This document shows, one piece after another, positions 11,605-13,546 of a DNA stretch of 64,000 nucleotides. The stretch is from Corallochytrium limacisporum Hawaii. Lineage: Eukaryota > Protista > Pluriformea. The stretch spans positions 1-64,000 of the forward strand of contig PDIP01000149.1 of NCBI GenBank assembly GCA_002811645.1. The letters are read 5' to 3'. The position numbers and the translations under genes were made by a program. The first letter of the stretch is position 1, and each line of letters opens with the position of its first letter. The notes under the pieces are model-generated. The model was not told the DNA's origin, did not search any database, and saw only the letters and a list, made by a program, of their open reading frames with translations.

Positions 11605-12736
11605 TGCATGGTTCCTGAGTCTAACCAGAGCGCTCTGTAGCATCAAGAGCCTATGCCATTCACCCTTCTGCTTTTGCATCCATCATTCTCTGTTCTAAAT
11701 TTACAACATTTCATCATAACTTCAAAGCATGTACTTCAATCCTCCATACATCATCGTTTATGCGAAGCAGATCCTAGAGCAATAAAATCGCCGTTTGCCC
11801 ATACACAGCTGTTCTTCTTCGTCACAGACTAGATCCCATCCTTTTGCGCTTCTATCCGATGCGCATGACCGTCGTCAAATGGGCATAACCATCGACAAAC
11901 ATCATACCCGTTGGCCCATAGCGGTTCCCGTCACCACAAGGGTTTCCACTAACGAATCCATCCACTATCACCAGGGACCCATCGGAGAGCGAGAAGCGGG
12001 CGGGATTGTCTGGGCACACTACTGCGCGAGGAAAAACTTGTTGGAAAAATCTAGAGCCTCCGCCGCATCATCGATGCAAAATGTAAACCCACCGGAGATA
12101 GTGATACGATGGGAGGGCGAGTTGGGACTCGCCACACTGGCGGCGCGCACAAGCGAGGTCTATTTTCCAATGCTGTTCTCCTGCGCTGGTACCAGTACAT
12201 CACGCGGGGGCAGAAACTTGGAGAAGAGAAGGTCCCCCCCCCCCCAAAGGGAGAAGGGGAAAAGTTCCCCGAACAAAAAATTATCCTCGAGAACATTTCG
12301 CCGCGAACGAACTCACAGTGGAAGCCGGGGGAACGGGTAGTAGAAAGATTCTCTACGAACAAAAGGGAGAAAAATGGCCTGACCCACCCTCCGTCTCTTT
12401 TGCCCGGGGGACAGAGAGGTTGGGTCGGGCGCTGCCGTGTCTCCCCCCGTCGTTGGTCCCGTGGCTGCAGGGCCGAACTGGAGAGACACCTTTGGCCATT
12501 GGAGTTGGTAGATGCGTGTGTAATCGTGCAATATTTTGGCTGTTTGCTTCTTTGCGAATGTGCCTATTGAACTCCAATTATCTCATTTAGATTGATGCGT
12601 AATGAATCATGAAGGTAGATCAAAGGGGAACGCAGGAGAGTAGCGGAACATGCTTTTTCTCGTCACGACAGGTCTTCCATTTGCGGAAATCACTTTGGAA
12701 ATAATCAAGCCCTTGTGCATTCAACTCGTTGTAAAT

Positions 12737-13015
12737 ATGAGCACAGTCAAGGTATTTATCAACTATTGTGGCGCGTGAGGCTACTCTGGAAAGGCTGGGG
12801 AAATTCAAATGATGATCGAGAATAAATTTGGACCGGACGACTTTGATTTTGATCTTCGGTCTGACGGGAGGATTGCAACGGGTCGTCTGGAGGTCACCAT
12901 CGACGGCAAGCTGGTGCACTCCAAATCAAGAGGAGATGGTTACGTTAACACTCCGCAAAAAAAGCAAAACATTCTTGATGCTGCCGAAGCAGCCTTGCAA
13001 GGCGCCGGCCTCTAA
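12737..13015 (+). CDS. SELENOW: Selenoprotein W (Rdx family, CxxU), 92 aa, in-frame TGA at 12776-12778 read as selenocysteine
   Basis: ATG 12737 is in frame with track ORF 12809-13015: MSTVKVFINYCGA[U]GYSGK...ATGRLEVTIDGKLVHSKSRGDGYVNT...AALQG. This matches the vertebrate SelW pattern YCGAUGY...ATGFFEV..GKLIHSKKKGDGYVDT on both sides of the TGA. Confidence 0.95.
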
Positions 13016-13099
13016 AGAATTGAGGCCCGTTTGAGCTGATCAGGGAATAGGGTGATGACGTAGGGATCTATGTGTATCAATCACTGGGAACTGCAGACG

Positions 13100-13172
13100 A
13101 TGACGAATCCAGCCTTGTAAAACCTTCATTTCACCTGTGTTTGTCACGATGACCTGGCTGTTGTATTCTGAC
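13100..13172 (+). promoter_or_regulatory. Candidate SECIS element (non-canonical) in the SELENOW 3' UTR
   Basis: ATGAC core at 13100, helix GAATCCAGC pairing with GTTGTATTC (8/9 pairs), unpaired AAAA at 13119-13122, closing TGAC at 13169-13172. Core-to-AA distance and apical region are longer than canonical. Confidence 0.42.
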
Positions 13173-13546
13173 AAGGAAAACAAGCTTAGCAAAGCTTCAG
13201 ATGTGGATCTCATTTAAAGGTATCGAAACGCCAGTGGACAGATTTCTCTCCCCGCCTTTTGCTGCTCCATCGGTGAAGTATTTCTTTATCCCTCGAGGTC
13301 TTGGTGGTTTCCTTTTCTTGAATTGGTATCTTACATTGCACTCTCTTCCCGCTATCGTTAAACGCCGTGTCGCGCACCAAGAATATTGTACATTACATGT
13401 TTCTAAAGTCGCAGAGTGGTTATATCAACATTTCAAAAGACATTCTTCCTTGTGTATGCGAATGTTCTATGCTATATACTTCTATGTAATAATGTTGAAA
13501 CTTATGCTAGAATGAAACACGTGTGTGTTTGCTTTGATTAACAGTT

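Follow-up and report, generated by a model that had tools for sequence, protein, structure and literature searches.

Within the stretch of Corallochytrium limacisporum DNA analyzed here (64,000 nucleotides, hereafter the window), a short forward-strand reading frame is interrupted near its start by a TGA, raising the question of whether this codon ends translation or instead specifies selenocysteine (Sec) in a selenoprotein W (SelW) gene. The mechanical ORF list begins a 68-aa ORF at the ATG at 12809, 24 codons 3' of an in-frame ATG at 12737. A first-pass annotation, made from the letters of the window alone, had pointed to a TGA-GYSGK context upstream of that listed start, and comparison with the window translation and the ORF list showed its description to be exact—the ATG at 12737 is followed by MSTVKVFINYCGA, the TGA at 12776-12778, GYSGK and the remainder of the frame, and a TAA at 13013-13015. 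Positions 12737-13015 (+) are thus made up of 13 codons, the TGA, 78 codons, and the TAA, with a YCGA-UGA-GY motif at 12764-12784 (+). As argued below, this interval is very probably a single-exon SelW gene whose UGA at 12776 is decoded as Sec by means of a SECIS in the 3'UTR. The features on which the argument draws are as follows:

12678-13375, plus strand: SelW transcript as covered by two transcript-like assemblies; unspliced, with a 5'UTR of ~59 nt, the coding sequence, and a 3'UTR of ~340-360 nt

12737-13015, plus strand: predicted SelW coding sequence; 92 residues including Sec14, then a TAA stop

12767-12778, plus strand: putative CGAU redox motif (Cys11-Gly-Ala-Sec14), with the predicted UGA Sec codon at 12776-12778; placed by alignment to mouse SelW and to a paralogue

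12991-13044, plus strand: SECIS-like hairpin without a core; a covariance match, with stem 13007-13012 paired with 13022-13027

13100-13172, plus strand: best SECIS candidate; the only K-turn-compatible fold in the SelW 3'UTR

Homology and transcripts of the SelW locus

The pieces of the protein on either side of the TGA were searched apart. The 78-aa piece following the TGA passes the Pfam Rdx profile (PF10262) with 28.1 bits against a cut-off of 22.6, spanning profile positions 11-73 of 74—the missing first ten positions are those that hold the redox motif. When the genome was searched in six frames with read-through, the SelW locus reached 40.6 bits over Rdx positions 1-73 with "1 TGA" inside the match, such that the 13 upstream codons add ~12 bits of homology. 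The same 78-aa piece matched the structure of mouse SelW (2NPB) with an E-value of 7.8e-10. In this alignment, Tyr2 of the query falls on Tyr15 of the chain, placing the Gly after the TGA at residue 14 and the TGA itself at residue 13, where mouse SelW has Sec (replaced by Cys in the crystallised mutant), and bearing out the earlier proposal that the codon marks the U in the CxxU motif of SelW (YCGAUGY). A GKLVHSK-x-RGDGYV block is near-identical to mouse SelW, with an overall identity of ~40% by our count. Likewise, in a local alignment in which the TGA was written as X, the codon paired with the second Cys of YCPGC in the genome's Cys-type Rdx paralogue. Judged from these comparisons, the homology to SelW is not due to chance, and a thioredoxin-like beta-alpha-beta-beta-beta-alpha fold is predicted for the product, solely from the 2NPB match.

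The paralogue itself is a second Rdx gene (L013:1429-1773, G000:C234), 114 aa long, Cys-type and bacterial-like, and scores 93.9 bits against PF10262. Searches for further relatives of the SelW product returned none: no protein of 43-136 aa in a collection of 5.8 billion shared words with the 78-aa piece, and a metagenome scan found none either. No orthologue from another species that might show the UGA to be conserved was found.

Transcript evidence came from a search of sequencing runs, which found two runs from 2015—of one organism and differing in sample and study—and one marine metatranscriptome. A contig from the first run (X1) covers 12678-13352 with 0 differences to the genome, and one from the second (X2) covers 12681-13375 with five. 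Both are colinear with the genome, without joints or indels, and both keep the TGA at 12776-12778. Given their gene-sized ends and the fact that the flanking intergenic DNA at 12300-12487 and 13381-13427 is uncovered, these contigs resemble a transcriptome assembly. The SelW mRNA is expressed and is unspliced at the UGA, with the RNA nature of the runs being labelled in the record as a guess only. The differences in X2 lie in the 5'UTR (12727 C>T), in the coding sequence (12755 T>G, Phe7Val; 12949 C>T, synonymous; 13002 G>C, Gly89Ala), and in the 3'UTR (13298 G>A); the coding differences therefore comprise one synonymous and two conservative changes (F7V and G89A). Two events that could do away with the codon had been raised by the first-pass annotation, and neither was seen: no TGT or TGC occurs at 12776-12778, where the two transcript-like assemblies retain TGA, and no splice from AAG|GTATTT at 12752 takes place, as neither contig shows any joint. 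The gene thus has no introns and consists of a single exon.

The position of the start codon bears on a different reading of the locus, namely that the true product is the 68-aa ORF from the ATG at 12809 and that the first 13 codons form a short upstream ORF. This would agree with the mechanical ORF call. Such a product, however, would be without beta-strand 1 and the entire CxxU redox centre, and the alignments to both the Rdx profile and mouse SelW span the TGA, with ~12 bits contributed by the 13 upstream codons. Moreover, the ATG at 12737 is the first in the SelW transcript and has an A at -3; a further in-frame ATG upstream, at 12650, falls outside the transcript. We consider a 68-aa product very improbable and take the 92-residue frame from 12737 as the preferred one.

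The selenocysteine pathway and other genes with in-frame TGA

Decoding of the TGA as Sec would call on a dedicated machinery, for which we searched the genome assembly (24,109,830 bases in 286 contigs). SepSecS was recovered as an intact ORF with 374 bits, SPS2/SelD with an in-frame TGA exactly at LKG-U-GCKVP, eEFSec at full length with an E-value of 4e-152 against human eEFSec, and SBP2 with an E-value of 1.3e-28 and human SECISBP2 as its sole PDB match. For PSTK, we found a weak candidate that scores 48 bits against TIGR03575, far under the curated cut-off. Matches to PF08433 were rejected as PSTK, corresponding to KTI12 itself and to PFK-2/FBPase.

The gene for tRNA-Sec was found with Rfam (RF01852, 48.8 bits against a cut-off of 47) and has the anticodon UCA; a pattern search of the genome with the anticodon arm indicated a single copy, and ARAGORN did not call it. 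In this gene (L001:1501-1644, corresponding to G000:C110:371719-371862), ~55 extra nt separate a canonical T arm from the 3' acceptor strand. This strand (CUGAUUGGC plus G) pairs at eight of nine positions with the 5' end and is followed by CCACA and then nine T. The Rfam alignment takes in the first 87 nt only, leaving the acceptor stem unpaired. Thus, the pathway that the first-pass annotation had listed is present for five of its six parts—tRNA-Sec, SepSecS, SPS2, eEFSec, and SBP2—with the sixth, PSTK, represented by the 48-bit candidate.

Other genes of the same genome also carry in-frame TGA codons. In six of them, the TGA stands at a known Sec site: GPx (VASK-U-GKT), a DsbA-like gene (U-PWC), a SelU-like gene, MsrA, and two thioredoxin reductases (TrxR), both of which end in GC-U-G. 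An in-frame TGA is also found in an ADP-ribosylhydrolase-like gene and in an AhpC-like gene (L034, G000:C241) with a W-U-PYC motif; for the latter, a K-turn scan gave no convincing SECIS within 600 nt past the stop codon. The Sep15/SelM and SelS profiles had no match in the genome. Within the window, TGA is not globally reassigned, because it terminates two of the 12 long ORFs. Taken together, the machinery, the other Sec genes, and the ordinary use of TGA as a stop bear out, as far as sequence can, the earlier view that Sec insertion works here even though TGA is a normal stop codon; clearly, this organism reads UGA as Sec only in particular genes.

These observations also weigh on whether the codon could be read as something other than Sec—as Cys, Trp, or Arg through near-cognate decoding—or whether the TGA could be a base-calling error for TGT or TGC. 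The atypical form of the SECIS candidate described below speaks for such readings, but the codon occupies exactly the Sec position of SelW in a genome with a Sec pathway and many other Sec genes, and the genome and two transcript assemblies, each from its own sample and study, agree on TGA. We therefore regard both possibilities as highly improbable, and conclude from the sequence comparisons that the TGA at 12776-12778 almost certainly codes for selenocysteine.

SECIS-like elements in the SelW mRNA

To characterize the insertion signal, 3'UTRs were scanned for K-turn-compatible hairpins, defined as a UGA on the 5' strand and a GA on the 3' strand with a helix between. Eight other genes yielded one clear element each, and the elements that we compared with the SelW candidate come from the SPS2, GPx, DsbA, MsrA, SelU, TrxR, and ADP-ribosylhydrolase-like genes. 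They follow a common plan: a 5' core of AUGAC or AUGAU (6/8), GUGAC (1/8), or CUGAC (1/8), a helix II of 10-13 bp with a bulge on its 3' side, then AAA or AAAA as an A-rich run, and finally UGA or CGA as the 3' core. Seven of the eight have their A-run 11-13 nt from the core, and one TrxR has it at 16 nt. The second TrxR SECIS candidate (L064, reverse-strand 2079-2146, G000:C233) is unusual, combining a CUGAC core and a 13-bp helix II with an AAA 16 nt from the core.

In the SelW 3'UTR, the candidate at 13100-13172 begins 88 nt past the stop codon and 325 nt past the UGA. It has a 5' core of AUGAC (13100-13104), an AAAA run (13119-13122) that sits 4 nt past the helix and 15 nt from the core, and a 3' core of UGAC (13169-13172). 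Its 10-bp helix II pairs 13105-13114 with 13156-13160, 13163, and 13165-13168, leaving bulges of U and UU on the 3' side. This helix is the weakest of the nine (-7.6 kcal/mol vs -10.4 to -19.1 kcal/mol), and no clear helix I is present. The candidate is not the minimum-energy fold, as the unconstrained 3'UTR fold favours a hairpin that pairs the AUGA, and no SECIS-like minimum-energy structure appeared in the unconstrained folds of the 3'UTR. Other pairings within the 3'UTR, starting from AUGA at 13054, AUGA at 13149, GUGA at 13051, and CUGA at 13036, were rejected, as helix II did not form or no AA motif lay in range. The marine metatranscriptome contig matches the window only at 13074-13178 (105 nt, 3'UTR) and then diverges to unrelated sequence. 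This block, which holds the SECIS candidate and is single-copy in the genome, shows one change, A13107U, that would break a helix II pair of the candidate; at a depth of 4, the change may be a variant or an error, and the contig itself could be chimeric.

We gauged how readily such a structure arises by chance with a relaxed descriptor, which had been widened after the SelW candidate was seen and in whose design MsrA was not used. It matched seven times in 483 kb of the genome (both strands), five of these matches lying in the 3'UTRs of SPS2, GPx, DsbA, MsrA, and the ADP-ribosylhydrolase-like gene and the others SelW and L024; among 20,000 dinucleotide shuffles of the SelW 3'UTR, 65 (0.3%) contained a match. 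A loose pattern (ATGA..AA..GA) gave matches no commoner than expected by chance. The L024 match, on the minus strand at plus-strand coordinates ~259-323 (G000:C132), has no recognised selenoprotein gene ahead of it; we found no obvious upstream ORF with an in-frame TGA, and it is probably a false positive.

Two model-based searches were also applied. Rfam (SECIS_1, RF00031) found no SECIS in the SelW locus or in the whole window. As a control, the same model was run on five other selenoprotein loci, where it picked up only the GPx element, below threshold at 23.8 bits, and missed those of SPS2, DsbA, SelU, and the ADP-ribosylhydrolase-like gene. Since four of these five good elements are missed too, the negative result for SelW is uninformative. 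Two covariance models built from the genome's own elements—R1 trained on a single SECIS, R2 on three, namely those of the ADP-ribosylhydrolase-like, SPS2, and DsbA genes—did not find 13100-13172 either, and are evidently too narrow, because all five unseen true SECIS elements were missed as well. The 3' halves of the elements did not align structurally in MAFFT. On balance, we lean slightly toward 13100-13172 as the SelW SECIS. That the 3'UTR contains some functional SECIS would be much likelier than that this particular hairpin is the one, given the family, the transcript, and the machinery. The SECIS that the first-pass annotation had taken for granted accordingly finds one K-turn-compatible candidate that is rare by chance, but not a clear-cut one, its fold being weak and missed by both Rfam and R2.

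A second structure lies over the stop codon. At 12991-13044, the covariance models reported a match of 14.2 bits with R1 and of 19.4 bits with R2 (E 0.001-0.004), the best and sole non-training match when the 64-kb window and six selenoprotein-gene loci were searched with filters off; another 144 kb, for which the default filters were kept, contained no non-training match. Its stem is GC-rich and 6 bp long, and its 9-nt loop, UAAAGAAUU, contains the UAA stop codon. Over 10 nt, the loop and the next base exactly match the apical loop of the ADP-ribosylhydrolase-like SECIS, with CUUGCA, a CGU bulge, and UGAGC also common to the flanks of the two, and the structure resembles the upper half of the genome's SECIS elements. 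Its local fold is stable, at -28.8 kcal/mol (z -2.1). The 5' strand reads AAGG in place of AUGA and contains no GA dinucleotide, and thus the tandem G.A pairs needed by SBP2 cannot form. With no K-turn core, the hairpin was rejected as a classical SECIS. The structure could be what remains of an older SECIS that now lies partly in the coding tail, an auxiliary element, or a chance resemblance.

The SelW mRNA would on this evidence carry two SECIS-related elements, one weak with a canonical core (13100-13172) and one stable but core-less (12991-13044). It is conceivable, though in our estimate rather unlikely, that the pair represents a snapshot of SECIS turnover or a two-part recoding signal. 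Under turnover, an old element would be decaying into the coding tail as a new one takes over; as a two-part signal, the hairpin resembling an apical loop would assist a poor SECIS.

The same two elements bear on whether a former Cys- or Sec-type SelW might survive here only as a pseudogene in decay or as a nonsense allele, with translation ending at the UGA after 13 residues and yielding no functional protein. A weak SECIS candidate missed by Rfam and by the covariance model would fit such decay, as would an AUGA-less hairpin that can be read as a decayed SECIS. On the other hand, the reading frame is undamaged before and after the TGA and retains those SelW motifs that are best conserved; the transcript occurs in two samples, between which the differences are few and, in the coding sequence, synonymous or conservative; the genome has a large working selenoproteome; and a K-turn-compatible SECIS is present despite a chance frequency of 0.3%. 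We think decay of the gene most improbable, and return to the reading of 12737-13015 as a SelW gene with Sec at codon 14.

Proposed decoding, annotation status, and comparison with known systems

Under this reading, the mRNA would extend from ~12678 to ~13375 and translation would start at its first AUG, at 12737. By the mechanism established for eukaryotic Sec insertion, SBP2 would bind the K-turn of the 3'UTR SECIS—most likely the K-turn-type hairpin at 13100-13172—and recruit eEFSec and Sec-tRNA(Sec) to the UGA at codon 14. The predicted product is a 92-residue Rdx protein with the CGAU redox motif at the end of its first beta-strand. By homology with SelW, Cys11 and Sec14 would form a redox-active selenenylsulfide in a small thioredoxin-fold protein, and a redox function is likewise suggested by homology with the mammalian protein.

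SelW occurs in most selenoprotein-containing eukaryotes and is among the most widespread selenoproteins (Lobanov et al. 2007, PMC2375036), and for this reason its presence in a Sec-using unicellular relative of animals is expected. The Corallochytrium genome paper makes no mention of selenoproteins (PMC5560861), and no paper in the library searched contained both "Corallochytrium" and "selenoprotein". Public protein sets appear to lack the gene, and no truncated SelW product is on record. The suggestion of the first-pass annotation that automated annotation truncates or misses the gene is thus consistent with the absence of a word match in the 5.8-billion-protein collection and of recorded truncated products, although it is not thereby proven. 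The family is well known; what is new is a missed and previously unlisted SelW gene with an oddly weak RNA insertion signal. More broadly, most SECIS elements of this organism escape standard models, and lineage-specific models are needed for annotation of its selenoproteome. The 3' end of SelW, with a weak SECIS candidate and a SECIS-like hairpin at the stop codon, offers a small testable puzzle.

One of the closest known systems is mammalian SELENOW, represented by the mouse protein (2NPB). Mouse SelW is 88 aa long, and the window gene, at 92 aa, belongs to the same length class. The two share the YCGAUGY motif with the UGA at the same aligned residue, the conserved GKLVHSK-x-RGDGYV block, and a Sec codon early in the ORF, with a SECIS expected in the 3'UTR. 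In contrast to SELENOW, the window gene has no introns, a divergent C-terminal tail, and only ~40% identity; in its SECIS candidate, helix II is weak and the AAA motif comes after a longer spacer, and a second, core-less SECIS-like hairpin lies over its stop codon. Cys-type Rdx proteins and bacterial-like SelW-like proteins—the paralogue of this genome and Atu0228 (2FA8)—also belong to PF10262, and their CxxC aligns with CxxU. The paralogue differs in having CPGC and no UGA, in its far higher Rdx score (the 93.9 bits given above), and in its bacterial-type look, whereas the window gene is of the eukaryotic SelW type. Compared with type II SECIS elements, both those of RF00031 and the genome's own, the SelW candidate is alike in its AUGA...GA K-turn core, ~10-bp helix II, U-rich 3' bulges, and A-rich motif, but differs from the genome's other elements in having the weakest inner fold and no evident helix I.
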